64,000 bases of DNA, from NCBI GenBank assembly GCA_964019335.1, contig OZ025732.1, forward strand, positions 186,001-250,000. The letters run 5' to 3'. Shown here one piece after another: positions 15,391-61,000 of this stretch. The first letter of the stretch is position 1; the number at the start of each line of letters is the position of its first letter. This stretch comes from Diplonema japonicum (lineage: Eukaryota; Protista; Euglenozoa: Diplonemea). The position numbers and the translations under genes are program-made. The notes under the pieces were generated by a model. It was not told where the DNA came from. It searched no databases and saw only the letters and a list, made by a program, of their open reading frames with translations.

Positions 15391-16015
15391 GAGAGCTCAG
15401 AAGTGGTTTCAGAGCTTGAGGAGCTTGTGAGAGCTGACCCTGAGCTTGTTCTGGTGGTGGAGGTGGGGAACTCGCCAGCTGTCGAAGTCTTGTCCATGTA
15501 CAGGACGGTCCTTCCTTCTGAACTTCGGTTCCTCGTTGTCACCGACTCCACAGGCTGTGTTACAAGGATAGGCTCTGGGTTTCTTCAAGAGTGCGACCAC
15601 CTGACGTCTGTTGATCTCATCCTCCCCAATGTTTCCACCATTGATGAAAATCTTTTATATGAGTGCGAAAATCTAGAAACCATCAACTTGAATGCGATGA
15701 CCAATCTTTCTTCCATTGGTGATCGCTTCTTGTTTGGGTGCGAATAACTAGAAACCATCAACTTGAATGCGATGACCAATCTTTCTTCTATTGGTTGTTA
15801 CTTCTTGTCTGGGTGCAAAAAACTAGAAACCATCGACTTGAATGCGATGACCAATCTTTCTTCTATTGGTCATAACTTCTTGAAGGGGTGCAAAAAACTA
15901 GAAACCATCAACTTGAATGCGATGACCAATCTTTCTTCCATTGGTGATGGCTTCTTGGAGGGGTGCGTAAAACTAGAAACTGTCGACTTGAATTAAAAAG
16001 AAAAGTCGGTGTTTA
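15386..16015 (+). pseudogene. Ubl-LRR paralog, 5'-truncated, 4 repeats, internal stop
   Basis: Near-identical to 18183 onward; TAA at ~15745; joined to the LINE through agctt microhomology. Confidence 0.85.
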
Positions 16016-16063
16016 GAGGAAGAAGAAAAAAAGAGGGGGAAAAAAGAAGAAAAAAGAACACCC

Positions 16064-16488
16064 TAGGCTATGCAGGGTCTCACAGACCTCGCACCCTATG
16101 ATTTTAGTTTCCACCTTTTCCTTTTCCACTTCTTGACTTTTAACTTCCCTTCTGCTTTCCCAACATGGTTTCCGTCCCGGGTATGACGTTAAACTGCGTC
16201 CGCTGACGCATTTGGGTCAACATTCTCTGATGACCAAGCCGTCTTTTTCCGTTTCTTCTCCCCTTCTCTTTGTTATGTTATTTTCATTATTCTTTCTGGC
16301 GATAGACTGATACGGGCCATGGAAGCAACCTCTGCTTAATTCCTGGTACGTGGGAGGCTCCTCTTGAGGATGTCAGTCACCTTTTCCCTTTTTTACTCGA
16401 CTCTCTGTTTTCGTATGCAGTATTTATTCTTTCCCACCCCTTTTTATCTATTTCTTCGCTTCTTCATCCTAACTTGAAACCATTTCAG
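16064..16488 (+). mobile_element. PLE family 1 3'UTR copy
   Basis: Near-identical to 10277-10701. Confidence 0.9.
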
Positions 16489-17905: not shown

Positions 17906-19273
17906 ATGAAAAGAAAGAGATCAAATGAAGGAATGAACGATATGACAGTGTTCGTGAAGACGGGAGGCGGGGTTCACGATGTGGAAGTGTCTGGGAAGGA
18001 GACGGTGGGGATCCTGTACAAGAAGGCGGGGTGTGCTGCTGGTTTACTCGAAGGCAAGTTCGAACTGGTTTGGGAGGGCGAGGTCCTGGACAGGAACGGG
18101 GGTGAAGATATCCAGGAACTCGGGCTCGTGGAGGGCAGCGTGGTCCATGTGGAGGCGAAGATGAGAACCGTTCAGCTGGAGGAGCTTGAGAGCTCAAAAG
18201 TGGTTTCAGAGCTTGAGGAGCTTGTGAGAGCTGACCCTGAGCTTGTTCTGGTGGTGGAGGTGGGGAACTCGCCAGCTGTCGAAGTCTTGTCCATGGACAG
18301 GACGGTCCTTCCTTCTGAACTTCGGTTCCTCGTTGTCACCGACTCCACAGGCTGTGTTACAAGGATAGGCTCTGGGTTTCTTCAAGAGTGCGACCACCTG
18401 ACGTCTGTTGATCTCATCCTCCCCAATGTTTCCACCATTGATGAAAATCTTTTATATGAGTGCGAAAATCTAGAAACCATCAACTTGAATGCGATGACCA
18501 ATCTTTCTTCCATTGGTGATGGCTTCTTGTTTGGGTGCGAAAAACTAGAAACCATCAACTTGAATGCGATGACCAATCTTTCTTCCATTGGTCATAACTT
18601 CTTGGAGAAGTGCAAAAAACTAGAAACCATCAACTTGAATGCGATGACCAATCTTTCTTCTATTGGTGATTACTTCTTGTATGGGTGCGTAAAACTAGAA
18701 ACCATCGACTTGAATGCGATGACCAATCTTTCTTCCATTGGTGATGGCTTCTTGTTTAGGTGCGTAAAACTAGAAACCATCGACTTGAATGCGATGACCA
18801 ATCTTTCTTCTATTGGTCATAGCTTCTTGTCTGGGTGCGTAAAACTAGAAACCATCGACTTGAATGCGATGACCAATCTTTCTTCTATTGGTGATGGCTT
18901 CTTGTCTGGGTGCGAAAAACTAGAAACCATATACTTGAATGCGTTGACCAATCTTTCTTCTATTGGTGATCGCTTCTTGTTTGGGTGCAAAAAACTAGAA
19001 ACCATCGACTTGAATGCGATGACCAATCTTTCTTCCATTGGTGATCGCTTCTTGTTTGGGTGCAAAAAACTAGAAACCATCAACTTGAATGCGATGACCA
19101 ATCTTTCTTCCATTGGTGATCGCTTCTTGTTTGGGTGCAAAAAACTAGAAACCATCGACTTGAATGCGTTGACCAATCTTTCTTCCATTGGTGATGGCTT
19201 CTTGGAGGGGTGCGTAAAACTAGAAACTGTCGACTTGAATTTAAAAAGAAAAAAAAGAAAAGTCGGTGTTTAG
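17906..19273 (+). CDS. Ubl-LRR protein, 10 tandem 25-aa (75-bp) BspA-like repeats, basic termini
   Basis: Ubl-like N-terminus (MTVFVKT...GKFELVWEGEVL...IQELGLVEGSVVHV); repeat LETIxLNAMTNLSSIGxxFLxxCxK. Confidence 0.88.
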   Translation: MKRKRSNEGMNDMTVFVKTGGGVHDVEVSGKETVGILYKKAGCAAGLLEGKFELVWEGEVLDRNGGEDIQELGLVEGSVVHVEAKMRTVQLEELESSKVVSELEELVRADPELVLVVEVGNSPAVEVLSMDRTVLPSELRFLVVTDSTGCVTRIGSGFLQECDHLTSVDLILPNVSTIDENLLYECENLETINLNAMTNLSSIGDGFLFGCEKLETINLNAMTNLSSIGHNFLEKCKKLETINLNAMTNLSSIGDYFLYGCVKLETIDLNAMTNLSSIGDGFLFRCVKLETIDLNAMTNLSSIGHSFLSGCVKLETIDLNAMTNLSSIGDGFLSGCEKLETIYLNALTNLSSIGDRFLFGCKKLETIDLNAMTNLSSIGDRFLFGCKKLETINLNAMTNLSSIGDRFLFGCKKLETIDLNALTNLSSIGDGFLEGCVKLETVDLNLKRKKRKVGV

Positions 19274-19704
19274 AAGAAGAAGAAAAAAAGAGGGGAAAAA
19301 AAGAAGAAAAAAGAACACCCTGGCGCTGAGAAACATCTTCGTGGAAAAACCAACGGAAAGCAATCCAATACCTCAAAGACACCGGGGACCTGCCCCCCTC
19401 CGCGACAACTCCACAACAACCATCTAACCTGCTGAAGTAGCATGCCGATCAGAAGGCGGCTGAGGCACTTGTCATTTAATCAGAATCCCGAGATCCCATC
19501 CCTGATCCCCAAAATAGAGAGTGTACCATCCTGTTTCTCGCGGAAACAGAGAACCTACCCCCTCCCCACCACAGCACCCGACCAATCAGATGCAGCAGTG
19601 TGAAAAAAAAAAAGCCCCTCTCTCCCCAAACAAAACAAACAAACAAACATTTCCCCACCCCCGATAACGTATAATTAAGAAAAAATATGGGGGGGAAAGG
19701 ATAC

Positions 19705-21510: not shown

Positions 21511-22938
21511 CGTGAGTTCAGAAATACAGCATTCTGTAGCTGTAGATCGAGGCCGTCAACTTCGGGTTTCTGCCCAAAGGTCGACCTCGCACCCTATGAT
21601 TTTAGTTTCCACCTTTTCCTTTTCCACTTCTTGTCTTTTAACTTCCCTTCTGCTTTCCCAACATGGTTTCCGTCCCGGGTATGACGTTAAACTGCGTCCG
21701 CCGACGCATTTGGGTCAACATTCTCTGATGACCAAGCCGTCTTTTTCCGTTTCTTCTCCCCTTCTCTTTGTTATGTTATTTTCATTATTCTTTCTGGCGA
21801 TAGACTGATACGGGCCATGGAAGCAACCTCTGCTTAATTCCTGGTACGTGGGAGGCTCCTCTTGAGGATGTCAGTCACCTTTTCCCTTTTTTACTCGACT
21901 CTCTGTTTTCGTATGCAGTATTTATTCTTTCCCACCCCTTTTTATCTATTTCTTCGCTTCTTCATCCTAACTTAAAACCATTTCAGTTGCCTCTAACTGC
22001 ACTACCTTGTGGGCGCCGTTTAGACGCAACCAGAGGCTCTGCAGGTTTTTAACTCTTAAGATTAGTTTTTAAGACTTCTCACAGCTTTGCTGTACCAACC
22101 CCAGCGACCAACAATGGGGACTTACTTCACCGTAGGTCACTCTGCAGGGTCGCATTTATGTAGACCCAAATACGAAACTGATCTCCTCCCGTTCGTCGTT
22201 GAAAGCCGAAGTTTTCGAGGGCTTTCTTCCGAAAAAAGCCCGTTTTTGATAAAATGCCTTTTGACCGCACAACTAGAGACTCCCCACCTCTACATCCTAC
22301 ATCCTGAGAAATCCGCTCAGCCCCTTGTACGTCAAAGAGGGGGTCCATGCGAGACACGGCGTTAGTTGGGCGATGATAGGTTTCGTAAACTGGCCCTGGG
22401 GAGCTCTCGACCGTGCAGTGATAGTCCTGACTGCACGGGTGAACATACAGGCAAGGCATGCACGTTTTTTTGATGAGGTGAGCCGCGCTATATGACTGAA
22501 CGTATATTTGCACATATATATAGTGCCCTATATCCATTCTATGCACCCAACTATTCCTTTTCCCCCCCGTTCTTACCTAGACAAGGAGAACCCTTCGTTA
22601 GCTTTGCTGCCCGCGCAGGCTACGTCCTTCGCACAGGACCAACCTGCACGCTCAGGAAAGTGGTGGAAAAAAAGCCCTCAGTAGGCAACTCGGCTCATGT
22701 TGAAATACTCCGGTCGGACCCCGTTACGGCAACGGGTGCAGTTCATACCCACCATCAGCTCATTATGACATGTCTAGACCTCCTTGTCCCCGGTCCTCTA
22801 ACCCGTCTAGTGCTTTGACCAACTTGTGACTGTCATTCTAAAAGCTGTCCTAAATAAAACTGCTGCTAGGAGTCAGGTAACCAATCCACCTTTGTAGAAA
22901 CCCTCCGTTTTTCTAAAGCATCAAGCATTTTCATAGCG

Positions 22939-25900
22939 ATGAAGAGACCCGCTTACGGCCGCTTTCCAACTCGTTATGACACGCGCGCATCACAGGTGCG
23001 GCGTGCCGCAGGAAATGCACCCCTAAAGATCAATACCTTTCCGTCAACAACGAATAAAACAAACACTTATAAGAAGTATAGTCAGTCGCGCATATATAAC
23101 TCCCACCCCTTCAACTACCGTGCAATCAACAGGTCGCCCTCCAGAGAGGAAGTCATCCGCACCATCTGTGACGCCTATGGTGCGGGTGTCCGAAAGGCCC
23201 TCTTCGTACGTGATGTCGTACAAAACGGCAACGTGCTAAAGGTCCACCTGGAGATCGCCACCAGGGACACACATATTCCCTATGCACTCTTCACGCAGGC
23301 ACTCCTACACCACCATGGAGTCCGTGCCTGTTTCACCGAAGGTGTAGCACCGACGCGTCCCGTCAAGACCTTACGGAAAACGCCTACTACTCCTCAACCG
23401 GCCCACCGGCCGAACCACCGGTCTGGCCCCCAGCCCGCTTATCGTCACGGATACCAACCTGCCTACGATAACCGCTGGGGCAAAGATCAAAACAGGTACG
23501 AGATCCGCAAGGACTTCTTCCTTAGCACAATGGCAAAGGACCAAGTCAAGAAGTCGCGGGACTTCTCCAAGCCTAGCCCGGTCAGCTGCAAACGAAACAA
23601 CGGCAGCATTGACTGGGCCCTCTGGGAGTCTCTCAGCCAGGACGCAGCCGCCAAGTTCATGGCCAAGTACAGCCGCATCGTAAAGAACATGCGCCAAGGA
23701 AAGGCCCCCGAACAGGACGCAGCAGGTATCATCTACCTCGCTGTCGACAAACACGGTGAACCTGTGTACGCAGGGCAGACGTTTAACACCTTACGTCGTC
23801 GTATGCAGGGCCACTGGAGCAGCGCCAGATCGCACAGAGAGAACGCTGAAAGCAACGACACCCGCTTTCACAAGGCCCTCAGGGAAAACGGGGGCCCGTT
23901 ATTCGCTTTCCCCGTCGAATCGATCAACCCCAAGTTCTTCGACGACGCCAAGTCCTTCCGTCGTGTTGCGATCCCCAGGGAGAACCAGTACATCAATAGG
24001 CTGGCTTGCTCCCTTAACATGCGTGGTAGGTTTGCTAAGACGCAGACCCGTCGCCGCCGCAACACGAAACGTAAACCTAAGACGGTACGCGAGCAGCAAC
24101 AGCAGCGACACCAACACCAGGGGCGCTCGAATGCCAAACAGGACCCCAGCAGCAACACTACTACGTCCCCTTCGAACCCCAACAACACCCCCACCAGATC
24201 TACCGCTCCCTCGATACGGCTGAACGACGACGGGGAGCTGTCGATCCAGGCTACTGGGTCCAACTACAAGTCCCTGTGTATGAAGATCACCGCGATGTGT
24301 GCACACCCCGATGTGCTGAACTACGACTTCACTACCTGGGCCCCCAAGACCGTCTTCAGGTACCTGAACTTCCTGAGACGTTACTTCGTCGGGAACTTCT
24401 TCACCGCCAAGATCGCGGCTATCGAACGAGGCCTCACCAACCGCCTCAGCCCTGCCCTCTTGAAAAAGGTGGTCCGCCGAGACGAAGGCTTCGTGTGGTT
24501 CAAAACGAGTTTTGACCACAAGGCCAAGGAGATGATCCTCTGGCGTAAGGTCTTCGAGGACAAGGAGGTAATTGCGGCATGCCCCAAGCCAGCCCTCCTT
24601 CGCAGAGTACACATGTGCAACAAGCTTGGTCAAACCCTCAAGGCCACAGTGTGCAATGTGACGAAGCTCAGCATCGAGACCCCGCGTCCAGAAGCGGCCG
24701 AGCCTACAACAAACTGCCCTTGCTCGAAGCGCAAGACCTCACACACACATGAGGGACACGCCTGCGGACTAGCAGCAGAGGTCATCGATGACGACGAAGT
24801 GAAGGAGGTTCTGAACAGAGGCATGAAGTTCCGCCTCTCAACACACGCCCTCCTCTCTTCCCAAAGTCTCGAGGAGGACATCAACGGGTTCATCACTCAG
24901 AACTTTCGGAGATCCCCTGCAGTGAAAAAGGATTCCTTCCGGAAGGTCCTCCTCGCCAAGGCACAGAACCTTCTCCACCCCCACACTCAGTCTCCGGTCT
25001 TCGACCCCTCAGTCCCGGAGTTCATCAAGACAAAGCTCCGTAAACTTCAGGAGGTCTACGTTTTCCTCCCCATAGACAAAAGCACCCACGACATTGGCGT
25101 CTGTTGCAAGGATCACTACCTCAGGATCCTGCACCAACAGCTTGATAGCCAAGCTTTCGAGCCGGTCTCGAAGCCCTTGGACTCGATCTTCTCCGAAATA
25201 GCTGATCAAGCCAAGACCTTCAACCTCGATTCCACACGTCGCATGCCATACCTGTACGGTACCCTGAAGCTACACAAAGACAAAGTGGGCGTCAGGTGGA
25301 TCTCTGGTGTCTCCTCCACTGATGCACCCCCTGTGGACCAACCAGCAGCGGTCAGCACGCAGGAAATTATGGAGAACTTGGTCGCAGCAGGCGGCGATAC
25401 AACGGGCAATAAAGCTAAGAAACCCACAGCTGCCACCACGGCCCTCCATCTAGAACTGTCTTCCCTCCTGAAGGCTGTCCAACGCGCGCTGCTGGACAAG
25501 GATCTGGAGGGCAGGTCCAAGACCCACGGTCCCGACGGTATCCGACTAAAGCGGTACTGGATCGTCGACTCGGCCGAGAACGTAGCTGCGGATATCAAGC
25601 AGCAGTACACGGCTTACAAAAGCCTGTCCCCTGCCACGTACGACTTCCGGGACATGTACACCAACCTCGACCAAGGGCGTCTGAAAGAGGGGGTTCGTAA
25701 AGCAGTCCAAGAAGCGTTCGACTTCACCGGCAAGAACCTCACCCGTGGCAAGGACGGGAGCTCCTTCACAGATGCCGACGAGGACGATGTCTACACCCCG
25801 GAACGGATCCATAAGCTCCTGGACCTCGTCGTTGACAACACCTATGTTGTGCAGGGTGGCCGCGCCGTTCGTCAAGTAAAGGGTATCCCCATGGGTGGGA

Positions 25901-26805
25901 ACGCCTCCCCCGACCTGGCGAACCTGTTCTGCTACGCCGTGGAGGCCGCATACATCGACAAGCTCCTCGCCGAAGAGGACTGGGAGACCTTGAAACGCTA
26001 CTGCAACGCGTGTCGCTACATCGACGACTTCCTGTTGTGGAGCACTGCGCCACCCCCGGAGGAGCTTTATGGCATGGCTTATGTAAAGACCTCTTCAGAC
26101 CCATGCGACGTCCCCTTTATCGGGATTCGCATCCGGATAGAGCGCCACGAACAAGCTAAGCACAACTATATTAGACTTAGCATTAACGATAAGGCGCAGA
26201 ACTGGCGCTTCCGGCCTACGCGGTTCACCCACGGGCACACCGCGGCGCCCACCACCCAGGGACCAGGCATCTTCAAGGGCATGGTCATCCGTGCCTGCGC
26301 CCTGACCAACAACATCGCGGACCTCAAACGGGAGATCGCTTCAGTGATCTACCTGCTCCTAGATCGCGGTCACGACAAGGGCGGCCTGCGGAAAGCGTAC
26401 AACGCCTTCCTTATCGAACGCGTGGATCGACGCTTCGCCATGGAGAAAAGCAACCTGCTGGCCTTCTTCACGCAAGTCCTCCACCGATACGACGCCAAAG
26501 CCCCGGTAGATTCTTGGTTGCCGGAAAAAACGTACATAGGCCCCAAGAAACCCCGTGCGCTTCCCACGGACGACTCCTCAGCTGACTCCTCAGTCGTCTC
26601 CTCAGTCGCCTTCTCGGGGGGCCCCTCAGACGAGCCCTCGGACAGTTCCTCGGACAGCTCTTCAGGTCTTGTCGAACCGTCACAACCCCGAGCAGCCTCC
26701 GTGGTCTCACCATCTGGTGTCACGGACCAGGTTTTTTCGCCCCCCACCTGCACACCAACAGCGGGGAAGGTCGCCTGGGCCTGGAATGCGGCTGGGCCGT
26801 CATAA
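22939..26805 (+). CDS. PLE polyprotein: N-terminal GIY-YIG endonuclease, Cys/His linker, PLE-type reverse transcriptase
   Basis: GIIYLAV...VYAGQT..TLRRRMQGH...ENQYINRL...LN; CPC...H..GH; YGTLKLHK, YDFRDMYTNL, KGIPMGGNASPDLANL, RYIDD. Confidence 0.92.
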   Translation: MKRPAYGRFPTRYDTRASQVRRAAGNAPLKINTFPSTTNKTNTYKKYSQSRIYNSHPFNYRAINRSPSREEVIRTICDAYGAGVRKALFVRDVVQNGNVLKVHLEIATRDTHIPYALFTQALLHHHGVRACFTEGVAPTRPVKTLRKTPTTPQPAHRPNHRSGPQPAYRHGYQPAYDNRWGKDQNRYEIRKDFFLSTMAKDQVKKSRDFSKPSPVSCKRNNGSIDWALWESLSQDAAAKFMAKYSRIVKNMRQGKAPEQDAAGIIYLAVDKHGEPVYAGQTFNTLRRRMQGHWSSARSHRENAESNDTRFHKALRENGGPLFAFPVESINPKFFDDAKSFRRVAIPRENQYINRLACSLNMRGRFAKTQTRRRRNTKRKPKTVREQQQQRHQHQGRSNAKQDPSSNTTTSPSNPNNTPTRSTAPSIRLNDDGELSIQATGSNYKSLCMKITAMCAHPDVLNYDFTTWAPKTVFRYLNFLRRYFVGNFFTAKIAAIERGLTNRLSPALLKKVVRRDEGFVWFKTSFDHKAKEMILWRKVFEDKEVIAACPKPALLRRVHMCNKLGQTLKATVCNVTKLSIETPRPEAAEPTTNCPCSKRKTSHTHEGHACGLAAEVIDDDEVKEVLNRGMKFRLSTHALLSSQSLEEDINGFITQNFRRSPAVKKDSFRKVLLAKAQNLLHPHTQSPVFDPSVPEFIKTKLRKLQEVYVFLPIDKSTHDIGVCCKDHYLRILHQQLDSQAFEPVSKPLDSIFSEIADQAKTFNLDSTRRMPYLYGTLKLHKDKVGVRWISGVSSTDAPPVDQPAAVSTQEIMENLVAAGGDTTGNKAKKPTAATTALHLELSSLLKAVQRALLDKDLEGRSKTHGPDGIRLKRYWIVDSAENVAADIKQQYTAYKSLSPATYDFRDMYTNLDQGRLKEGVRKAVQEAFDFTGKNLTRGKDGSSFTDADEDDVYTPERIHKLLDLVVDNTYVVQGGRAVRQVKGIPMGGNASPDLANLFCYAVEAAYIDKLLAEEDWETLKRYCNACRYIDDFLLWSTAPPPEELYGMAYVKTSSDPCDVPFIGIRIRIERHEQAKHNYIRLSINDKAQNWRFRPTRFTHGHTAAPTTQGPGIFKGMVIRACALTNNIADLKREIASVIYLLLDRGHDKGGLRKAYNAFLIERVDRRFAMEKSNLLAFFTQVLHRYDAKAPVDSWLPEKTYIGPKKPRALPTDDSSADSSVVSSVAFSGGPSDEPSDSSSDSSSGLVEPSQPRAASVVSPSGVTDQVFSPPTCTPTAGKVAWAWNAAGPS

Positions 26806-35008: not shown

Positions 35009-36754
35009 ATGAAAAGAAAGAGATCAAATGAAGGAATGAACGATATGACAGTGTTCGTGAAGACGGGAGGCGGGGTTCACGATGTGGAAGTGTCTGGGAA
35101 GGAGACGGTGGGGATCCTGTACAAGAAGGCGGGGTGTGCTGCTGGTTTACTCGAAGGCAAGTTCGAACTGGTTTGGGAGGGTGAGGTCCTGGACAGGAAC
35201 GGGGGTGAAGATATCCAGGAACTCGGGCTCGTGGAGGGCAGCGTGGTCCATGTGGAGGCGAAGAAGATGAGAACCGTTCAGCTGGAGGAGCTTGAGAGCT
35301 CAGAAGTGGTTTCAGAGCTTGAGGAGCTTGTGAGAGCTGACCCTGAGCTTGTTCTGGTGGTGGAGGTGGGGAACTCGCCAGCTGTCGAAGTCTTGTCCAT
35401 GAAGACGACAGTCCTTCCTTCTGAACTTCGGTTCCTCGTTGTCACCGACTCCACAGGCTGTGTTACAAGGATAGGCTCTGGGTTTCTTCAAGAGTGCGAC
35501 CACCTGACGTCTGTTGATCTCATCCTCCCCAATGTTTCCACCATTGATGAAAATCTTTTATATGAGTGCAAAAATCTAGAAACCATCAACTTGAATGCGA
35601 TGACCAATCTTTCTTCTATTGGTTGTTACTTCTTGTGTGGGTGCGAAAAACTAGAAACCATCGACTTGAATGCGATGACCAATCTTTCTTCTATTGGTGA
35701 TTGCTTCTTGGAGGGGTGCGTAAAACTAGAAACCATCAACTTGAATGCGATGACCAATCTTTCTTCTATTGGTTATTGCTTCTTGGAGGGGTGCGAAAAA
35801 CTAGAAACCATCAACTTGAATGCGATGACGAATCTTTCTTCCATTGGTCATAACTTCTTGTGTGGGTGCGTAAAACTAGAAACCATCAACTTGAATGCGA
35901 TGACCAATCTTTCTTCTATTGGTGATGGCTTCTTGGAGGGGTGCAAAAAACTAGAAACCATCGACTTGAATGCGATGACCAATCTTTCTTCCATTGGTAA
36001 TTACTTCTTGTGTGAGTGCGTAAAACTAGAAACCATCAACTTGAATGCGATGACCAATCTTTCTTCTATTGGTTGTTACTTCTTGTGTGGGTGCGAAAAA
36101 CTAGAAACCATCGACTTGAATGCGATGACCAATCTTTCTTCTATTGGTGATCGCTTCTTGGAGGGGTGCGTAAAACTAGAAACCATCGACTTGAATGCGA
36201 TGACCAATCTTTCTTCTATTGGTGATTACTTCTTGTTTGGGTGCGAAATACTAGAAACCATCAACTTGAATGCGATGACCAATCTTTCTTCCATTGGTCA
36301 TAACTTCTTGAAGGGGTGCAAAAAACTAGAAACCATCAACTTGAATGCGATGACCAATCTTTCTTCCATTGGTGATTACTTCTTGTTTGGGTGCGAAAAA
36401 CTAGAAACCATCGACTTGAATGCGATGACCAATCTTTCTTCTATTGGTGATTACTTCTTGTCTGGGTGCGAAAAGCTAGAAACCATCAACTTGAATGCGA
36501 TGACCAATCTTTCTTCTATTGGTGATTACTTCTTGTCTGGGTGCGAAAAGCTAGAAACCATCAACTTGAATGCGATGACCAATCTTTCTTCCATTGGTGA
36601 TTACTTCTTGTTTGGGTGCGAAAAACTAGAAACCATCGACTTGAATACGTTGACCAATCTTTCTTCCATTGGTGATGGCTTCTTGGAGGAGTGCGTAAAA
36701 CTAGAAACTGTCGACTTGAATTTAAAAAGAAAAAAAAAAGAAGTCGGTGTTTAG
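35009..36754 (+). CDS. Ubl-LRR protein, 15 tandem 25-aa repeats
   Basis: Paralog of 17906-19273 with five more repeats; flanks also duplicated. Confidence 0.88.
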   Translation: MKRKRSNEGMNDMTVFVKTGGGVHDVEVSGKETVGILYKKAGCAAGLLEGKFELVWEGEVLDRNGGEDIQELGLVEGSVVHVEAKKMRTVQLEELESSEVVSELEELVRADPELVLVVEVGNSPAVEVLSMKTTVLPSELRFLVVTDSTGCVTRIGSGFLQECDHLTSVDLILPNVSTIDENLLYECKNLETINLNAMTNLSSIGCYFLCGCEKLETIDLNAMTNLSSIGDCFLEGCVKLETINLNAMTNLSSIGYCFLEGCEKLETINLNAMTNLSSIGHNFLCGCVKLETINLNAMTNLSSIGDGFLEGCKKLETIDLNAMTNLSSIGNYFLCECVKLETINLNAMTNLSSIGCYFLCGCEKLETIDLNAMTNLSSIGDRFLEGCVKLETIDLNAMTNLSSIGDYFLFGCEILETINLNAMTNLSSIGHNFLKGCKKLETINLNAMTNLSSIGDYFLFGCEKLETIDLNAMTNLSSIGDYFLSGCEKLETINLNAMTNLSSIGDYFLSGCEKLETINLNAMTNLSSIGDYFLFGCEKLETIDLNTLTNLSSIGDGFLEECVKLETVDLNLKRKKKEVGV

Positions 36755-37589
36755 AAAAGAAGAGGGGAAAAAAGAAGAAAAAAGAACACCCTGGCGCTGA
36801 GAAACATCTTTGTGGAAAAACCAACGGAAAGCAATCCAATACCTCAAAGACACCGGGGACCTGCCCCCCTCCGCAACAACTCCACAACAACCATCTAACC
36901 TGCTGAAGTAGCATGCCGATCAGAAGGCGGCTGAGGCACTTGTCATTTAATCAGAATCCCGAGATCCCATCCCTGATCCCCAAATAGAGAGTGTACAATC
37001 CTGTTTCTCGCGGAAACAGAGAACCTACCCCCTCCCCACCACAGCACCCGACCAATCAGATGCAGCAGTGTGAAAAAAAAAGCCCCCCTCTCCCCAAACA
37101 AAACAAACAAACAAACATTTCCCCACCCCCGATAACGTATAATGAAGAAAAAATATGGGGGGGAAAGGATTCTGAGGTCCGGCACCCTTAGTAGCCAAAA
37201 AAAAAAAAGGAATAAAAAGAATTTTATCATTAAGAATTTTTTATTTTTATTTTTATTTTATTTATTCCTTGTTTTCCCTAAACAATGTTTTGGTCAAAAC
37301 GTTCTTTTTAGGGAAGGAAAAAAAAAAAAAAAAAAAAAAGGAATAAAAAGAAAGAGAAGAAAGCAATTGATTGTCTGCCTCTCTTCTCCCTCTCTATTTT
37401 TATTTTTATTTTAATTTTATTTTATTCACAGGGTGCCCCAACCGGCTTCCTTTAAATCATCGAACATTTTTATTTTTATTTTTATTTTTATTTTTATTTT
37501 TAATCTTAGTTTTAAATTGTGTTTTATTTTTAGTTTTATTTTTAATTTTTTTTTTATTTTGTTGTTTCTTTTTCTTATTTTTCTTTCTA

Positions 37590-39450: not shown

Positions 39451-39766
39451 CGTCCCGGGTATGACGTTAAACTGCGTCCGCCGACGCATTTGGGTCAACA
39501 TTCTCTGATGACCAAGCCGTCTTTTTCCGTTTCTTCTCCCCTTCTCTTTGTTATGTTATTTTCATTATTCTTTCTGGCGATAGACTGATACGGGCCATGG
39601 AAGCAACCTCTGCTTAATTCCTGGTACGTGGGAGGCTCCTCTTGAGGATGTCAGTCACCTTTTCCCTTTTTTACTCGACTCTCTGTTTTCGTATGCAGTA
39701 TTTATTCTTTCCCACCCCTTTCTATCTATTTCTTCGCTTCTTCATCCTAACTTAAAACCATTTCAG
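39451..39766 (+). mobile_element. PLE family 1 3'UTR copy
   Basis: Near-identical to 10386-10701. Confidence 0.9.
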
Positions 39767-39795: not shown

Positions 39796-41082
39796 GCTAT
39801 TGAAATGGTTTTAAGTTAGGATGAAGAAGCGAAGAAATAGATAAAAAGGGGTGGGAAAGAATAAATACTGCATACGAAAACAGAGAGTCGAGTAAAAAAG
39901 GGAAAAGGTGACTGACATCCTCAAGAGGAGCCTCCCACGTACCAGGAATTAAGCAGAGGTTGCTTCCATGGCCCGTATCAGTCTATCGCCAGAAAGAATA
40001 ATGAAAATAACATAACAAAGAGAAGGGGAGAAGAAACGGAAAAAGACGGCTTGGTCATCAGAGAATGTTGACCCAAATGTGTCGGCGGACGCAGTTTAAC
40101 GTCATACCCGGGACGGAAACCATGTTGGGAAAGCAGAAGGGAAGTTAAGAGTCAAGAAGTGGAAAAGGAAAAGGTGGAAACTAAAATCATAGGGTGCGAG
40201 GTCTGTGAGACCCTGCATAGCCTATCGCCCTCGTAGCACGCCGGGCCGGCACTCCTACATTGCGTAGGGTCGTCTCCAGTAGTTCCTAGTTGTAGGAGTT
40301 CAGCACAGTCGACCACTGTGACTCGCTGTAGTAGAGGGTCCCTGCCCCCACGAAGTCAGCGAGTAGGGCTGCCACAGTCGGATACGACTTGTCCTTGAAC
40401 CCTTGGGTCTGCAACCGAAAGCCCTGTTCCTGGCGGGAAGCGTAGAGCCACGTCGAGTCATAACAGACCAGCAGACACGGGATCGCGACGCGTGTGTCGA
40501 GGGGGACCGTGACCATGGGGGTCTCACCCAGGAAGTGTGTGCAAGCCCTGGACATGCAGCTGAGGTCAAAGACGGCCTCGCCCTGGGAAAGGAAGCCCAG
40601 GTGTCGAAGCTCATCCAGGTCCTCAGGGCCGTCGACGTCTGCTTCCCTGGTGAGCCTCTTAAGGGCGACAAGTCCAGTGACTCTGGTGTTCGGCCTCGTC
40701 GCGGCGAGATCCCGTTTGGCCGCGGGAAGGGCGGGGCCGTCTTCGGGTTCCGGGCGTTTGTTCCTCTCCCCGTTGTAGGTGAGCAGGAGAGGGGTCCTCC
40801 CTGGAGTCCTAGTCTCGTCACCTCTTGGGGCCTCGGAACCGAAGAGTGGGTGTTTCCAGCCGCCTTGGGCGAAGAACTCCGACCACCACTGTTGCTGGCA
40901 AGAAACGTTTCCGTTTCCGTTCCCGTTCCCGTTCCCGTTTCCGTTTCCATACTTTTCAAAATTCTTATGGAAACGCGTTTCCTTCTTAAGGAAACATAAG
41001 GAAACGTTTCCGTTTCCGTTTCCGTTTCCGTTTCCCTTTTTTTCAAAAAATGCATGGAAACGCGTTTCCATGCCAGCATAGC
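39796..41082. mobile_element. Small MITE with GCTATGCTGGCA TIRs and (GGAAAC)n core, split by the PLE
   Basis: gctat (39796-39800) + gctggca (40894-40900) rebuilds the left TIR; tgccagcatagc at 41071-41082 is the right TIR; unsplit left end at ~45544. Confidence 0.7.
39801..40893 (-). mobile_element. 5'-truncated PLE family 1 copy, inverted
   Basis: Reverse complement matches ~9604-10700. Confidence 0.92.
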
Positions 41083-41137: not shown

Positions 41138-42436
41138 ATGAAAAGAAAGAGGTCAGATGAAGGAATGAACGATATGACAGTGTTCGTGAAGACTGGAGGC
41201 GGGGTTCACGATGTGGAAGTGTTGGGAAAGGACCTATACAAGAAGGTGGGGTGTGCTGCTAGTTTAATCGAAACCATGAAAGGAAGCGAAGGACCATCGG
41301 CAGTGACGCTGCAGGCGAGGCTCCCCACCTCTGAGACCATCAGCATTGAGGCAGTGGCTTCGGAGGAGATGAAGAAGGTGAAGGAGAGGATCGCATCGAT
41401 GGGAGGGTTGGATGTGGACAGCTTCACCCTCACCTTCGATGGGGAGGTGGTGGCGGCGACGGCTGCTGACGACGGCGGTGGACAGCTTGTCGGAGATCTT
41501 CCTTTTGAGGATGGAAGCATGCTTGAAGTGGTGGTGAGCAAGAGGCAGGCGGCTCTGTTGAAGCTTTCAGAGATAGGGATCGAAGTGAAAGGAAGGAAAT
41601 TGTACAGGACACTTGATGCCTTTTCCGATTTGATGAGCAAGGGGGACGAAATAGCAGATGAGAAGATGTGCGAGGTTGTGAACCTTCTCCTGGATGCTGG
41701 GGTGAGTGGTGGGGAGGAGCAGGCCCTTCACATGACGGCCCAGCACAATCTTCCTTCTTGTGTGGATGTCCTCTTGACTCGCACTTCTGTGGACGTGAAT
41801 TCAGAAGTAGAGCTTACTGACGATTGGGGTGAAACCCATACAGCACTTCACCGGGCCACTTCGGAGGTGGCGGCTGTTCTCATCTCGAGACACAATGCAG
41901 ATGTCAATGCAAGAGACAGGGAAGGTGTACCTGTCATTCACTATGTAGCACGTTGGAGTTCGTTGGGCAAGCTTTCTGTACTTCTGGAGCACAACGCAGA
42001 TGTGAATGCAAGAGACAAGAGAGGAAGGACGGCTCTTCATGTCTCCTCTGCTGTGGTTCACCTGCTACCAAAGGTTCACCTGCTTCTTGAACACAAGGCG
42101 GACATCGAGGCAAAAGACAACAAGGGAAGAACACCCCTTTTCTCGGCTAGTACAGAGCCAGCAAAGGCACTTCTTGAGCGCAATGCTGATATGAGGGCAA
42201 GGGACAATAGAGGGAACACGTGTCTGCACCACGCTGTTAAAAGAAGAATGTTCGAAGTGTTACCTGTTCTGCTGAGACACAATGCAGATGTGACGGCAAG
42301 GAACGATGAAGGGAAGACGGCTCTCGATCTTATCCCTTTTGATGGCAGGGACAAGGTCGAGGTCAGGGCGATGCGACACCTGCTGTTGCAGAACCTTCAG
42401 CAACTAGGGCGAAACACTTCGACACCCTTACACTAA
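41138..42436 (+). CDS. Ubl-ankyrin repeat protein with LRR-family leader
   Basis: Open 432-aa frame; Ubl plus ankyrin repeats; diverged from 20281 copy. Confidence 0.85.
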   Translation: MKRKRSDEGMNDMTVFVKTGGGVHDVEVLGKDLYKKVGCAASLIETMKGSEGPSAVTLQARLPTSETISIEAVASEEMKKVKERIASMGGLDVDSFTLTFDGEVVAATAADDGGGQLVGDLPFEDGSMLEVVVSKRQAALLKLSEIGIEVKGRKLYRTLDAFSDLMSKGDEIADEKMCEVVNLLLDAGVSGGEEQALHMTAQHNLPSCVDVLLTRTSVDVNSEVELTDDWGETHTALHRATSEVAAVLISRHNADVNARDREGVPVIHYVARWSSLGKLSVLLEHNADVNARDKRGRTALHVSSAVVHLLPKVHLLLEHKADIEAKDNKGRTPLFSASTEPAKALLERNADMRARDNRGNTCLHHAVKRRMFEVLPVLLRHNADVTARNDEGKTALDLIPFDGRDKVEVRAMRHLLLQNLQQLGRNTSTPLH

Positions 42437-42632
42437 AACACATCATTGGGAACATAGGGTGGTCCTCAAGTACTTAGGTAAGGAAAAAAAGAAAGGTGGG
42501 ATATCCCCTAGCGACATTCTTTTTTATAATAGATTCATTCAACTTCAGGTATCCCAGTGTCTCTTTTTTATTTTTTCGTTTACTTTTTGCTTCTTCTCCA
42601 TAGCTTACTTTTTTAAAAGGATACCACATAAC

Positions 42633-42812
42633 CATGAAGGGCAGTGAAGGACCATCGGCAGTGACTTGAGGCAGTGGCTTCGGAGGAGATGAAGAAGGTG
42701 AAGGAGAGGATCGCATCGATGGGAGGGTTGGATGTGGACATCTTCACCCTCACCTTCGATGGGGTGGTGGTGGCGGCGACGGCTGCTGACGACGGCGGTG
42801 GACAGCTTGTCG
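42633..42812 (+). pseudogene. Ubl fragment followed by deleted PLE tail (42811-42896)
   Basis: Identity to 20281-20500 with deletion; tail ends aaaatcatttca. Confidence 0.7.
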
Positions 42813-43034
42813 TGTAGGCTCCTCTTGAGGATGTCAGTCACTTTTTCCCTTTTTATCCATTTTTTCGCTTCTCTATTCTGACTTAAAATCATTTCAATAA
42901 CCCGTATGCTAACTACTTCGTTCCTATCATAGTGAATTGTTTTTTGTTCTATCTTTTTTATTTTCTTTTATTTTTTTCCGAACTCTGATTTAATCAGGAC
43001 AAAAAAAAAGAAAAAGAAAGAAAACAAAAGAACC

Positions 43035-44370
43035 ATGAGCTTCTCGAGGTACATCGGCAGGAAGACCATCGCCAAGGCAGCTGTGCTCTCCGTCTTGTGG
43101 GGTGTGTGCCTGTATTTCGTGGTGATCTCCGTCCCGGGTATGACGTTAAACTGCGTCCGCCGACACATTTGGGTCAACATTCTCTGATGACCAAGCCGTC
43201 TTTTTCCGTTTCTTCTCCCCTTCTCTTTGTTATGTTATTTTCATTATTCTTTCTGGCGATAGACTGATACGGGCCATGGAAGCAACCTCTGCTTAATTCC
43301 TGGTACGTGGGAGGCTCCTCTTGAGGATGTCAGTCACCTTTTCCCTTTTTTACTCGACTCTCTGTTTTCGTATGCAGTATTTATTCTTTCCCACCCCTTT
43401 TTATCTATTTCTTCGCTTCTTCATCCTAACTTAAAACCATTTCAGGTGCCTGTATTTCGTGGTGAAGCTGTCCACAGAGTTCAGCAGCACGGGGCGGAAG
43501 AACACAGCCAATTTGAAAATGGAGAGGGTGAAGACTATGGAACCACCGTTTTTCATGATATCTACCCAGGTGCCGGTTGGAGGGTGCAGGTACAGACTGA
43601 AGAAATGCGAATTTGTACAGGACACGGGCAGCGCGAATTTCACCAGAACAGACTGCAGCCCGGCCGTTCTCGAAAAAAGCTACCAGACAAAAACCTCCCT
43701 CCTCAACGCCACCATAGCCAGGGAGCTGGGCGTGCTGTTCAGCTCTCCATTTGATATGTTGAACCTGCAGTTCGATCTAGTCCACAGTGGGAATAGTTCC
43801 GTGGCGATGAACCCTCAGGCCTGTGGTCTCACAGATCCTGATACACATGAAAGATCACAATTCGTCCTACCCATCGGGGACCATGTGGCCATAGGTGCGA
43901 TTGAGCGGAACGATGCAAACATGGATCTGAACCGGTTCGGTGTGCCTTCGTACATAGGGTACGGGCAGATGGCACACTTCACCTTCTCCCTCGAGCAGGA
44001 GATCTTCATCGGGAGCAGCAAGCCTCAGAACACCACCACGTTCGGACTCTCGCAGTTTCCGAAGTACCCGGACCACAACGAGTTCGAGCTTCGCATCAGC
44101 GCTGCGTCGTTTCTCGTCCGCCGTATTGTTCACAAGGAAGGCCAGTCGCTCATCGACCTCATGGGAGGGATCTTCGGGTGGGTCGGTGTACTCACAGGAG
44201 CGTGTATCCACAGTCTGTTCTCCACCGTTGTCGACATGGCCACGAAGCCCAAGAACGGACGGCAGAAACAAGTTAAAGAAGCCGACGACGAAAGAAGCGG
44301 CTTGAACTATGCCATTCTAGAAGAGGAAAGGTGCAAATCGGTTTCTTCCCTTCCTGTTCACCAGATATGA
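43035..44370 (+). CDS. Two-TM DEG/ENaC/PAC-like channel subunit, interrupted by a 320-bp PLE tail
   Basis: MSFSRYIGRKTIAKAAVLSVLWGV (43035-43105) joins CLYFVVKLSTE (43446 onward), collinear with paralog 46102. Confidence 0.75.
43126..43445 (+). mobile_element. PLE family 1 3'UTR insertion with 20-bp TSD
   Basis: gtgcctgtatttcgtggtga at 43106-43125 and 43446-43465. Confidence 0.95.
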
Positions 44371-46101: not shown

Positions 46102-47118
46102 ATGGGGTGCGCAAAGTACATCACACGGCAAACGGTTTTGAAAGCCACCGTTCTCTCCCTGCTGTGGGGGGTCTGCGTCTACTTCGTTGTGAAGCTCAGC
46201 CACGAGTACCAAGAAACAGGGCAGAAGAACACCGTGTCTTTTAGTATTATAAGAGAAGACGCAATGCAACCACCCTACATGCTGACCGCCACAAGGGTCC
46301 CGAGAGACGTGTGTAGGTTCAAACTCAACAGGTGTGAATTCACAAAGGATTCCGGCAGCGTGAACTCTTCTGTGATAAATTGCAACGCTGCTGTATCCGA
46401 CAAAAAGTACACTATAGAAACGTCACTTCTGAACGCGACGAAGGCGAGGGAGCTGGGGGTGTTGTTTAAATCCCCTTTTGACGACCTGACCCTGTTGTAC
46501 GACCTGGTGTACGTTAAAAACGGTACCTTGGCGTCTCCCAAGGCATGTGGGTTGGTTGACCATACTAGCGTCGCTCGCGGTCGTGAGACGGAACTGGCAC
46601 AGTTCGCCGTTCCCATAGGTGATCAAAGTATAGTAACATCTATTGAGACCAACGACCCAGACCTGGACCTCAGGCGTATAGGTGTGCCTTCGTACATAGG
46701 GTACGGGCAGATGGCACACTTCACCTTCTCCCTCGAGCAGGAGGTACTTATAGGTGCCCCTGCTCAAAATACGACTAGGTTCGGTTTATCGCAGTTTCCG
46801 AAGTACTCCCAGCAAGATGCTCTCGAGCTTCGCATCAGCGCTGCGTCGTTTCTCGTCCGCCGTATCGTTCACAAGGAAGGCCAGTCGCTCATCGACCTCA
46901 TGGGAGGGATCTTCGGGTGGGTCGGGATCCTCACAGGTGCGTGTATCCATAGTTTATTCACCAATGTAGTCGATATTGCCGAGAAGGCCAAGAAGGAGAA
47001 AGAGAAACAAGCTCGCAAAGCAAAGAATAAAGAAGTCTTTGAAAACCTCGGGGAGGCGATGGTCCCCCTGAAGGAGGTTCCTTCTTCTCTCCCCTCAGTT
47101 GCCATTTACCACATATGA
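46102..47118 (+). CDS. Two-TM DEG/ENaC/PAC-like channel subunit (intact paralog)
   Basis: N-terminal TM, Cys-containing ectodomain, TM2 LMGGIFGWVGILTGACI in register with ASIC-type LLGDIGGQMGLFIGASI. Confidence 0.75.
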   Translation: MGCAKYITRQTVLKATVLSLLWGVCVYFVVKLSHEYQETGQKNTVSFSIIREDAMQPPYMLTATRVPRDVCRFKLNRCEFTKDSGSVNSSVINCNAAVSDKKYTIETSLLNATKARELGVLFKSPFDDLTLLYDLVYVKNGTLASPKACGLVDHTSVARGRETELAQFAVPIGDQSIVTSIETNDPDLDLRRIGVPSYIGYGQMAHFTFSLEQEVLIGAPAQNTTRFGLSQFPKYSQQDALELRISAASFLVRRIVHKEGQSLIDLMGGIFGWVGILTGACIHSLFTNVVDIAEKAKKEKEKQARKAKNKEVFENLGEAMVPLKEVPSSLPSVAIYHI

Positions 47119-58099: not shown

Positions 58100-61000
58100 G
58101 TATGTTTTTTTTTTTTTTTTTTTTTGTGTTTTTTTGTGTTTCTGTACTTTATTGGTGTCCGACCGTGCCAATAAAGTCAATAGGTAATACGGTTTGTAAA
58201 GAAAGAAAATTGAAAGAAAGTTGAGAAAGCAGATCGCAGAAAAGAGAGCTAAAAGAGGGTAAAAGAAGACATTGAAGTTGACAAGAAGTGAAAAAAAAAA
58301 AAAAGAAAAAAAAAAAGGAAGCAGAGGACAGCACGAGCAGCATGGAGAGACTGCGGGCGGGGTTACGCGGGTACGGCCTGGGGCTGGAGGGAGGAGCCGG
58401 AGAGCTGTACGCGGTGGCGGGGTCGAAGGCGGGAAAGAAGGGACATGAGGTGCGGCGCCTCTGGGCGGAGCTGCGGGGCAACGACAAGGAGTACACGAAG
58501 CTCCTTGAGGAAGGCACAGACTACGACGAGTAGCGGGTTTGCGGGTTTGCGCAGACCTGGTCTGTGTGCTGTGGCTAGGGCCACGCAGATGGACATCAAC
58601 ATCGCCACCTTCTCAGGGACACCTTCATCGTCTACCCGGTGCCTGGGAAACCGAAGAAGGGACAGAAGCCGGTCCACATCGCCTTCGACGGGAAGTCCTT
58701 CTACGTCGTCATCGAGCCGAGGACACCGTCGGCACTGAAAGGGGTGACAGCTACGGACTTCACCCCCCCAAAAGTAGGGGTCCCCGTAGCGGATGGTCAG
58801 AAGAAGGCGTGGACGGTGGTCGGCAAACCACAACGGAAAGCAAGGACGACGAAGAAGGAGGAAAGGGCGTGGAAGCTAGAAAGTGGCCAGTACAACGTCC
58901 CTTTCGTAACGTGGGAGGAGTTACTAGAGGGCAAGGACGGGGTAGCGATGGCCAGTGAAAAGTGCGTGGAGGAGGCTGCAGGTCAGGAGTGGACGGGGAA
59001 CAAAGCCTTATTGCTGAAGAAGGACGGTGAAGGAAGACACAAGCACGACATCGTTCTGCAAGATGGGAAGGCATACTCCAACAGACGGATGTTCGTGCTA
59101 TTACTATCCGGAAAAATAGAACGCGTCACAAGGGAGGACACACGGGACGTAAAGTTAGGGGAGCACTACAGCAGGGCGGCGGTAATCATACCGAAGGCAT
59201 ATGTACCTTCTTCACTGTGGGAGACGGCGGCGACCGCCAAGGAAGTGGCTGACAGAAGTCCTCAAGTTCGAGTCTATAATAGCAGTGTCCAAGGTGTCGA
59301 GCGGCCCGAACCCCCACGTAGACGCACTGGTGACGTTGCCGAAGGTCGAGCTCGCCAACATGGTAAAGGGGTCCGGAAGCAAAGGGGTCTTCATCAAACC
59401 AAGGGATGGCAAGCCGCAACCAGTTGCATGGCTGCCGAAAGAGACCACGCTGGAACAGGCGCTGAGCTTCGGCGAGGGACACGGCCTGGCCCTGAGGGAC
59501 CGACGGGAGACTAGGTGTCAGAACCACAGAAGAAGGGAAGATTCCACTGCTTAGCCGAATACTCGGAGAGGAGACGAGGAAGAGCGGGCAACACGGGGAG
59601 CCGATGTGGAGACTCTCGGGGCTCTACCGGGGAAGTGCAGGTGCGACACATCCTGCGAGCCATAGGATGGAATGGCGTGCCTGTGCGCGGCAGCTGGGCG
59701 GGCAGCACGAAGTGCTGGCTGATACGAGGACCGCAACCGCCGACGACATCCCTCCGTATTACGGGACCGCAGGGGGACGTTCTGCATTGCAGGATTGCTC
59801 AGGATGAGGGACCACCACCGAACGGTAAGCCGAGGACAACCCAGGTGTGGGGCAGGGCGGCGACACCGGGAAAGTCGTTCCTGAACGCTCTCAAGAATGG
59901 CCCGACACAGGGGGGACCACGGCCCAGCACAAGCGACCCCGCCCGACACGGAAAGCAATCGGACTCAAAGCAGACAGGACCACGCCCCAGCACAGGTGGT
60001 GCCTCGACTGAGAGAGCGCAGAAGACAAAGACAGCGGAGAACAAACAACAAGCCTCTGCAGTGGAAGACAGGCAGTTCCCCGATCTGTTTGGACATCATG
60101 TCCATTTGCGCCGCCATTTTCTGGACTTCCCTCTCCAGTCGGGCGTTTTCCTGCCTTAGCCTCTCTACCTCCGCTGTAGGTTTGACCTCCGGTGTCGGTC
60201 CTCCCGCGATCTTTTTAAGGGCGCGCTTGATGGCGGTGAGCCTGAGAGCGGGCCGGCTCCCCTTGGACAGACCTTCGCACAGAAAATAGCCCAAGGAAAG
60301 GAACAATCTTTTGACTTTACGGACGATGACGACGACTTGGGACCCCCACCAACAGAAGAAGACGAGGAAATGGAACGAGAACCAGAGGGAGAGGACGAGG
60401 ATGAAGATTGCGATTGGAGAATCTGCAAGACTGGGAGCTCACACGTTTTCAACAATGTGTTCCATCACTGGGACGCGGGATGCAGTGTTTGTGGGGAGGC
60501 CCTCACGAAGAAGAGACAAGGTGTAAAGTGCCTCCAGCAGGATTGTATGGTGTGTGTTTGCCGAGCGTGCGCGAAGTGACATGAAGTGAACGATGACCCC
60601 CACTCACGCGCCAATCCCCTCCCCTCATCATCATCAAAATCGATATCATCAGTAACACCATCATCATCATCAACATCACTTGAACCATCGAAATATGACC
60701 CTAAAGGGTTAGCCGAAAAGAAATTCGAGCGACTGGTCGTGGATGGGATAGAGCCAAACCCGGGACCCATCGTGCCCCGCCCGCCAACGGGGAATAGCTT
60801 CACGTTCCCTAACACATAATGGATCGTCATTGAACAACCGTCTCGGAGAGTACGCGGGTGTCCTCCCGGATGTGTTCTGCATGCAGGAGACGGCACTCAC
60901 GGCGCAAACGCAGTTGGAAATAGAACGAGTACTGAGAGGACGAGTGGGGGAAGCAGTACGAAAGGCTGTGGAGCAAACCGCAACCGGGGAGGAGGTCCAA

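Follow-up and report, generated by a model that had tools for sequence, protein, structure and literature searches.

A young Penelope-like retroelement tail interrupts a channel-like gene of Diplonema japonicum and ends in a candidate spliced-leader acceptor

Results

The Interrupted Gene and Its Intact Tandem Paralog

The DNA analysed here is a 64,000-nt stretch of the Diplonema japonicum genome (contig OZ025732.1; hereafter the window), in which a gene on the + strand is split by the 3′ tail of a Penelope-like retroelement (PLE). The frame is opened by the ATG at 43035, and the N-terminal coding part (43035-43105, +), as defined by translation and by alignment with the N-terminus of an intact paralog, spans 71 nt, that is, 23 codons plus 2 nt (phase 2), and encodes the first half of the first transmembrane helix (TM1). 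Behind the insert, the base at 43446 completes codon 24 and the frame is then open until the stop at 44368-44370, giving a remaining coding sequence (CDS) of 307 codons plus stop (43446-44370, +) that is covered by assembled RNA contigs (record 22 of run X3 and record 28 of run X7). When read unspliced, the frame meets a TGA at 43185, after 50 codons. By sequence arithmetic, removal of the segment from GT43106 to AG43445 restores the frame exactly, as a preliminary description of this locus had stated.

A protein search with the downstream part alone recovered the intact tandem paralog (46102-47118, +; 338 aa), a 61% identical protein. It carries no intron or insert at the homologous site, and its N-terminus is continuous there, reading ...LWGVCVYFVVKLS... 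in the alignment. Because the paralog runs uninterrupted through this site, the exact removal restores the ancestral reading, and the insertion site is, as judged from the same alignment, former coding sequence within the first transmembrane helix, with no old intron.

Pfam and PDB sequence searches with the gene were blank, and its identity came only from a fold search. An AlphaFold prediction for the paralog, which drew on 22 homologs, had a pLDDT of 84, and Foldseek matched it best to PAC/TMEM206/ASOR channels (E 2e-11), followed by ASIC channels. The gene is therefore predicted to encode a two-transmembrane channel with a PAC/TMEM206/ASIC-like fold, and the earlier label of a channel gene holds at the fold level. 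The tandem pair (43035-44370 and 46102-47118) represents a small family, for which 1.8 billion proteins yielded 30 representatives at E<=0.001; its fold likeness is to the animal PAC/TMEM206 proton-activated chloride channels and to ASIC, with no Pfam sequence match.

Anatomy and Age of the Insertion

A 20-nt string starting with GTGCCT is present at 43106-43125 (+) and again at 43446-43465 (+), as found by direct reading of the sequence and by a search for target-site duplications (TSDs); the first GT of copy 1 is the splice donor proposed in the preliminary description. Between both TSD copies lie 320 nt (43126-43445, +), which consist of 2 extra nt followed by a 318-nt PLE 3′ tail and, based on alignment and on identity to genomic copies, form a 5′-truncated retroelement insert. 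The tail (43128-43445) was 99-100% identical to six further copies in the window and has more than 40 near-identical copies (99-100%) in a 62.5-Mb genome piece. In view of these copies, 43126-43445 is a repeat insertion with a TSD and not a chance match. The 318 nt were even 100% identical to many genomic copies, which marks the insert as a very young copy.

The insert contained no Rfam family at E<=1, and the whole window none at the gathering threshold; only noise was returned at E<=1, in an A/T-rich stretch upstream. A hammerhead or other known RNA in the tail was rejected on this blank result at the gathering threshold. The predicted fold of the insert RNA was no better than that of shuffled sequences (z -0.13). 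A discrete SINE-like unit of 320 bp, considered on account of the equal-length copies ending at 43445 and 39766, was also rejected, as the truncations of the copies are continuous from 27 to 4771 nt.

The Parent Element

In L004, one of 20 fetched genomic loci (L001-L020), the tail is colinear with a ~3 kb 3′ region and an open reading frame (ORF) of 1288 aa, which is 99% identical to the ORF at 22939-26805 (+) of the window. Because ORF, 3′ region and tail are colinear there, the studied tail is assigned to an ORF-bearing element with putative GIY-YIG and reverse transcriptase (RT) domains, which bears out the earlier description of the insert as a PLE tail. Both domains were recognized from weak Pfam matches, with GIY-YIG near the N-terminus (residues 263-303, E 4.5e-4, 20.9 bits, under the cut-off of 22.6) upstream of RVT_1 near the C-terminus (residues 955-1037, E 8e-5, 22.8 bits, under the curated cut-off of 29.6).

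Comparison with L004 further showed that a tail piece at 21963-21986 (+) abuts the element head (TTGCCTCTAACTGC..., from 21987), forming a tail-to-head joint of the pseudo-long-terminal-repeat (pLTR) type. Ahead of the full-length copy, the tail is 24 nt long in L004 and, at 21583-21986 of the window, 404 nt, with the same head in both, and the final AG of the tail adjoins the first base of the ~950-nt 5′ untranslated region (UTR) of the next copy. An inverted tail-to-tail pair (39451-39766 / 39801-40897) lies around a C/G run, which is ~20 long, and one copy of this pair ends in TTTCA, not TTTCAG. All lengths between 27 and 4771 nt are represented among the 5′-truncated copies; TSDs, where findable, are 15-27 bp long. 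At L007:7973-8002 and L014:7970-8002, micro-insertions of just the last 27-31 nt of the tail (CTAAC...TTTCAG) were observed; they are extreme 5′ truncations with little beyond the branch-site-to-AG segment, apparently with short TSDs.

Similar to the Chlamys/Naiad PLEs (PMC8557442), the diplonemid element has a putative GIY-YIG before a putative RT, pLTR (tail-to-head) joints, inverted pairs and 5′ truncation, no hammerhead ribozyme, and an insertion bias to C-rich or (C)n targets; the Chlamys/Naiad type favours (C)n/(CA)n targets, and a hammerhead is typically missing in Naiad and in most Chlamys elements (PMC8557442). The apparent domain order, the pLTR joints, the inverted pair, the 5′ truncation, the lack of a hammerhead and the C-rich targets therefore support its assignment as a PLE of the Chlamys/Naiad type with an N-terminal GIY-YIG. 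It differs in its clear 15-27-bp TSDs and in its pLTR/body joint, which has an apparent spliced-leader (SL) trans-splice acceptor instead of a promoter plus cis-intron. A precedent for RNA processing at the joint is given by Penelope and Chlamys-3_cRei, in which a 5′-UTR intron spans the pLTR/body boundary (PMC8557442). Euglenozoa and Diplonema are unmentioned in that paper.

A second sense insertion of the same family, located by TSD search and gene comparison, lies at 7850-10701 (+) in the host CDS of a ubiquitin-ankyrin gene family. This 2.85-kb copy has a 19-bp TSD (CCACCTCTGAGACCATCAG), which starts with CC and thus allows no GT-AG removal. The same insertion and flank were seen three times (with duplicates ending at 34266 and in L016), so that segmental duplication of the region came after the insertion.

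The Target-Site Motif and the Origin of the GT

A 26-nt tail-end pattern matched 71 sites in the 62.5-Mb piece and 0 with the reversed control, and 29 of the 71 tails, with 24 distinct flanks, were inspected from the window and the 20 fetched loci. The terminal G was part of the element in 28 of the 29 tails. In all 24 distinct flanks, the sequence after this G reads NNRCC, mostly followed by T or C and with C-runs included; the element's own head (TTGCCT...) conforms to the same motif.

GT was the first pair in 4 of the 24 distinct flanks. The earlier statement that other insertions do not start with GT accordingly holds only in part; of these four, the three besides the insertion studied here are intergenic or nested in another element and not in host CDS. 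A GT-starting TSD and a host CDS are combined in only one of the 24, as the other exonic insertion (7850-10701) starts with CC. Enrichment of GT-starting TSDs, a test of which among exonic sense insertions had been suggested in the preliminary description, was not accepted: 4/24 compares with ~1.5 expected, in a sample that is too small and in which three of the four are intergenic or nested. GT is one possible filling of the two free positions (NN) in the target motif NNRCC(T). To start with GT is thus a chance event, with odds of roughly 1 in 6 to 1 in 16, and the exact removability of the insert follows from a TSD that happens to start with GT and is not a property of the element.

Splice Signals in the Insert

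The very end of the element (43346-43445, +) was examined by direct reading and by composition. Its last 100 nt are 75% C/T, at about the 99th percentile of the window, and contain CTAAC at 43426-43430, with the branch A 16 nt from the end, and TTTCAG at 43440-43445, with the CAG at 43443-43445. These signals, already noted in the preliminary description, amount by their letters to a strong and complete 3′ splice-site cassette that finishes on the element's final base. The older tail subfamily also keeps the terminal CATTTCAG, and the last 80-100 nt are conserved between the subfamilies.

The donor side is different in quality. In related diplonemids the consensus is (G)/GTATG for the 5′ splice site and CAG for the 3′ splice site (PMC12621601), and the proposed donor T/GTGCCT shares just the GT with it, in line with the weakness already conceded when it was proposed. 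A listing of GT sites with their phases gave a consensus-type donor within the insert, G/GTATGA at 43138-43143 (+); if it were spliced to AG43445, 32 additional nt would be retained, shifting the frame and bringing in an early TGA. With a further donor, T/GTATTT at 43112, 6 additional nt would be retained and the frame kept.

Spliced Leader and Gene Orientation in the Host

In Diplonema papillatum, genes lie in co-oriented clusters that are thought to be polycistronically transcribed, every mRNA gets a 39-nt spliced leader via trans-splicing, and GT-AG cis-introns, some holding transposable elements, occur in 41% of the genes (PMC10161547). The SL acceptor of trans-splicing kinetoplastids is marked by a long stretch of pyrimidines and the AG behind it (PMC2323293). 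In the D. japonicum genome, 157 copies of the leader 3′ end (...TACAGTTTCTGTACTTTATTG, ending in TTTATTG) followed by GT were found, and SL RNA genes read leader/GTACCC. The tails are nearly uniform in strand within contigs (65/68), and relative to flanking non-element ORFs in the 20 fetched loci they are on the same strand in 39 cases and on the opposite strand in 9. The tail thus has the features of a euglenozoan SL acceptor: a long pyrimidine tract plus AG, on the sense strand of a co-oriented cluster.

A native SL acceptor lies close by. A contig of run X3 carries the last 20 letters of the leader (TACAGTTTCTGTACTTTATT) before G42619, and because of this leader-bearing contig X3 is taken as an RNA run. 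The acceptor at 42619 consists of ~60 nt of pyrimidines and then AG, the same design as the element tail. That it could itself be a degenerate PLE tail was considered and rejected, because a duplicated ubiquitin-ankyrin 5′ piece has it as its native 5′-UTR acceptor. The SL-capped RNA at 42620-42853 begins at this duplicate, which copies the 5′ end of the ubiquitin-ankyrin gene (41138-42436) in truncated form and has an early TGA owing to a 38-nt deletion; transcribed and trans-spliced gene-5′ duplicates like this one have been described for D. papillatum (PMC10161547).

Two other places in the window touch on leader and acceptor sequences. At 58100-58190, taken in the preliminary description as a genuine intron with a GTATGT donor, a long T-run is followed by the 3′ part of the leader plus GTGTCCGACC (~58141-58166), so that the putative intron seems to contain a leader fragment, either retrocopied or resembling an SL RNA gene. 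At 454-530 on the minus strand, an older-subfamily tail finishes with TTTCAG; 14 nt downstream of it, an ATG (439, minus strand) starts a short frame (MSTDGKQHLSIVICGH...), and this tail may supply the 5′ processing site of a minus-strand gene.

RNA Contigs Across the Locus

RNA evidence came from four runs, all in the form of assembled contigs, in which rare forms are dropped and absence is not provable. No weight was given to contig depth, which in both RNA runs was higher for exon 1 and insert than for exon 2, as it cannot rank the parts of a gene.

On the upstream side, record 20 of X3 (43033-43160) and record 26 of X7 (43033-43157) both run from exon 1 unbroken through 43105/43106, 43125/43126 and 43138 into the insert; their common start at 43033 is an artefact of the repeat mask. 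On the downstream side, in record 22 of X3 (43416-44144), which starts 30 nt before the first unique base, the tail continues straight into exon 2 without branching at 43446. No 43105->43446 joint, the junction named in the preliminary description, was present among the 15 of 43 joints listed.

Record 28 of X7 (546 nt) is different. It lies on 43445-43968, with no mismatches from G43445 on, and has in front 22 unmatched letters, which are unprinted. The letter before GTGCC is therefore G; exon 1 ends in T, while the leader ends in G. Because G and not the T of exon 1 precedes 43446, this contig is not the cis-spliced or empty-site form, and since tail letters would have matched, its lead is not element tail. 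In total, 23 letters precede 43446, which is the length expected from a 31-mer graph if another leader-headed RNA also begins with GTGCCTG, and a genomic retrocopy of a leader-headed RNA beginning with GTGCCTG exists. From the alignment start and this length arithmetic, the 22-letter lead fits the spliced leader.

Other Repeats of the Window

The window holds further repeats. On the minus strand, opposite to the gene cluster, an ORF of 988 aa at 12400-15366 has a clear RVT_1 match (E 6e-26) and belongs to a different retroelement, probably of the long interspersed element type. Tandem arrays of a 75-bp repeat with ~90% identical units occur at 15551-16075, 18348-19322 and 35454-36803, inside the long ORFs 17906-19273 and 35009-36754, and recur in 5.5-5.8-kb units that each end in the element tail.

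Discussion

The explanation that we favour, and hold to be somewhat probable, is that a young 5′-truncated PLE tail disrupts the channel gene and that its terminal cassette most likely works as an SL acceptor. The part of the preliminary description that took the tail for a splice acceptor would then stand, as the end is a 3′ splice-site cassette and probably an acceptor, for trans-splicing rather than cis-splicing. Under this explanation, a PLE copy of 318 nt with 2 extra nt would have been inserted by target-primed reverse transcription at a site of the usual type, NNRCC[T], inside codon 24, with a 20-bp duplication made in the process. In a host that makes its mRNAs from co-oriented polycistronic clusters via SL trans-splicing, the cassette would most likely act as an SL acceptor; in the tail-to-head (pLTR) arrangement it directly meets the first base of the following copy and would yield an SL-capped, unit-length element mRNA. 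That the joint puts the AG on the first base of the 5′ UTR suggests that a capped mRNA for the downstream copy is the purpose of the cassette, and we infer that the tail serves the element's own mRNA. The equivalent job is done in Penelope and Chlamys-3_cRei by the pLTR promoter and the 5′-UTR intron, and possibly in other PLEs by hammerheads (PMC8557442).

Within the channel gene, the same cassette would cut the transcript in two. Exon 1 is read into the insert and stops at the TGA at 43185, and the downstream part would either keep the tail attached, as a precursor or read-through form, or receive the leader from 43446, in both cases without the start codon and half of TM1. Most likely this gene copy no longer functions, a loss made tolerable by the intact paralog, which lies 2.7 kb downstream and stands in for it. 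On balance, we view the locus as a recent disruption of a gene whose tandem paralog provides a buffer.

The preliminary description had instead proposed a retroelement route to intron gain, in which the segment from GT43106 of the TSD to AG43445 is cis-spliced as a newborn introner-like intron and an intact channel mRNA results. The arithmetic of this proposal is exact, with the restored reading confirmed by the paralog, and the tail brings the pyrimidine tract, CTAAC and CAG; moreover, the host splices GT-AG introns and has transposable elements within introns (PMC10161547), introners with one splice site of their own and the other from the TSD are known (PMC11282704), ~5% of the classified introner families derive from non-LTR retrotransposons (PMC12130899), and 28 of the 43 joints are undisplayed. 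However, in two runs the contigs continue unbranched over both 43105/43106 and 43125/43126, X3 joins the tail to exon 2, and the exon-2 contig of X7 has G and not T before 43446. The donor GTGCCT matches the consensus GTATG at the GT only, with better donors at 43112 and 43138, and the GT itself, incidental to the target motif, starts 4 of 24 flanks, one of them in host CDS. The absence of stops in the rest of the gene, cited in favour of splicing, is real, as the frame is open to 44368-44370, but it is no evidence for splicing, because the insert is too young for downstream disabling mutations to have accumulated whether it is spliced or not. A spliced junction would also be identical in sequence to the empty allele, so that RNA reads alone would be no proof. 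We therefore regard cis-splicing from GT43106 as improbable, and the claim that 43106-43445 is a newborn intron is not supported. Cis-splicing to AG43445 from one of the stronger donors, which from 43138 would add 32 nt, shift the frame and end translation early and from 43112 would add 6 nt, a two-residue insertion in TM1, seems more improbable still: 43138 fits the diplonemid consensus (G)/GTATG perfectly and a join of 43137 to 43446 also gives the G seen in X7 record 28, but the X3 and X7 contigs pass 43112 and 43138 without a branch, up to 43157-43160, the join of 43137 to 43446 in a 31-mer graph would give ~28 letters before 43446, not 23, and would be expected to align as a joint, and no joint of 43137 or 43111 to 43446 was found among the 15 of 43 listed.

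Plain gene disruption is the weightiest competitor to the acceptor explanation, although we consider it unlikely. Here, the likeness to a splice site is incidental, the AG is used neither in cis nor in trans, the lead of the X7 contig comes from a variant copy or an assembly chimera, and the tail is a pyrimidine-rich 3′ UTR required by the element's RT. The unspliced junctions (records 20, 22 and 26) are indeed the only forms seen letter for letter, the conservation of the last 80-100 nt between the tail subfamilies is what an RT signal would lead one to expect, and SL-headed element copies were not found in the genome. On the other side, the element ends precisely on CAG after CTAAC and a long pyrimidine tract, like the proven acceptor at 42619, pyrimidine tract plus AG marks the acceptor in trans-splicing organisms (PMC2323293), and X7 record 28, without mismatches from G43445, has a 23-letter lead of the length that the leader model predicts.

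Several of these observations, together with some others, weigh against the tail being an SL acceptor. The pyrimidine-rich end could be an RT recognition signal instead, and the RT and GIY-YIG matches by which the element was classified are both under the curated Pfam cut-offs. The leader identity of the X7 lead rests on the alignment start and length arithmetic, its letters being unprinted, and a 43137->43446 joint would likewise put G before 43446; such a joint, or one of 43105->43446, if weak, could hide among the 28 undisplayed joints, and assembled contigs drop rare forms. Local or nested insertion, as well as segmental duplication, may account for part of the co-orientation of the tails. 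A genomic pattern search for the leader followed by NNRCC returned only SL RNA genes (leader/GTACCC...) and three unrelated retrocopies and no SL-headed copy of the element, so that trans-splicing at the tail-to-head joint found no independent backing in this search.

Comparison with known systems places the insert near introners, such as the introner elements (IE) of Micromonas pusilla (PMC11282704, PMC12130899), in its geometry. Similar to them, it landed in an exon, one splice site would come from the element and the other from the TSD, and excision would take the element and one TSD copy exactly, with the frame restored at 43106-43445. In contrast, introners are defined by being spliced and by recurring as hundreds to thousands of introns, whereas the diplonemid insert is unspliced in the RNA contigs, and neither the splicing nor the recurrence as introns that define introners was seen. 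The diplonemid donor is also not built in, arising only when the NN of the target is GT (4/24), and a GT-starting insertion in a host gene was found once among the 24 distinct flanks. Most introners are DNA transposons, and no Penelope-like introner is mentioned in PMC12130899.

The element also bears comparison with a retroelement of the trypanosomes. The SIRE/VIPER element of Trypanosoma cruzi reportedly supplies a trans-splice acceptor to host genes, as is said to have been found by Vazquez et al. in 1994 in Mol Biochem Parasitol. As in the diplonemid case, a dispersed retroelement fragment in a polycistronic, SL-trans-splicing euglenozoan is said to provide a pyrimidine tract plus AG. The T. 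cruzi element differs in being a tyrosine-recombinase retroelement and not a PLE, and its acceptor is reportedly not at the exact terminus of the element; the diplonemid insert lies inside a CDS, with the use of its acceptor inferred. SIRE has been described in PMC6681497.

A wider proposal, which we advance tentatively and consider possible but less probable than its opposite, is that this PLE ends to the base in an SL acceptor, so that the spliceosome cuts and caps the mRNA of each downstream copy in tail-to-head arrays, replacing the promoter and intron or the hammerhead of other PLEs. Truncated tails would then install trans-splice sites able to split, re-head or truncate host genes, and targets that start with GT could occasionally seed a cis-intron.

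If the tail is an SL acceptor, it would represent a retroelement adaptation to a genome without gene-by-gene promoters, in which the element borrows the trans-splicing of the host for its own capped mRNA and, as a side effect, spreads processing sites through polycistronic clusters. The locus would then offer a concrete case for the question of how transposable elements create splice sites, and diplonemid PLEs would naturally give rise to novel 5′ ends and truncated genes, and possibly to novel introns.

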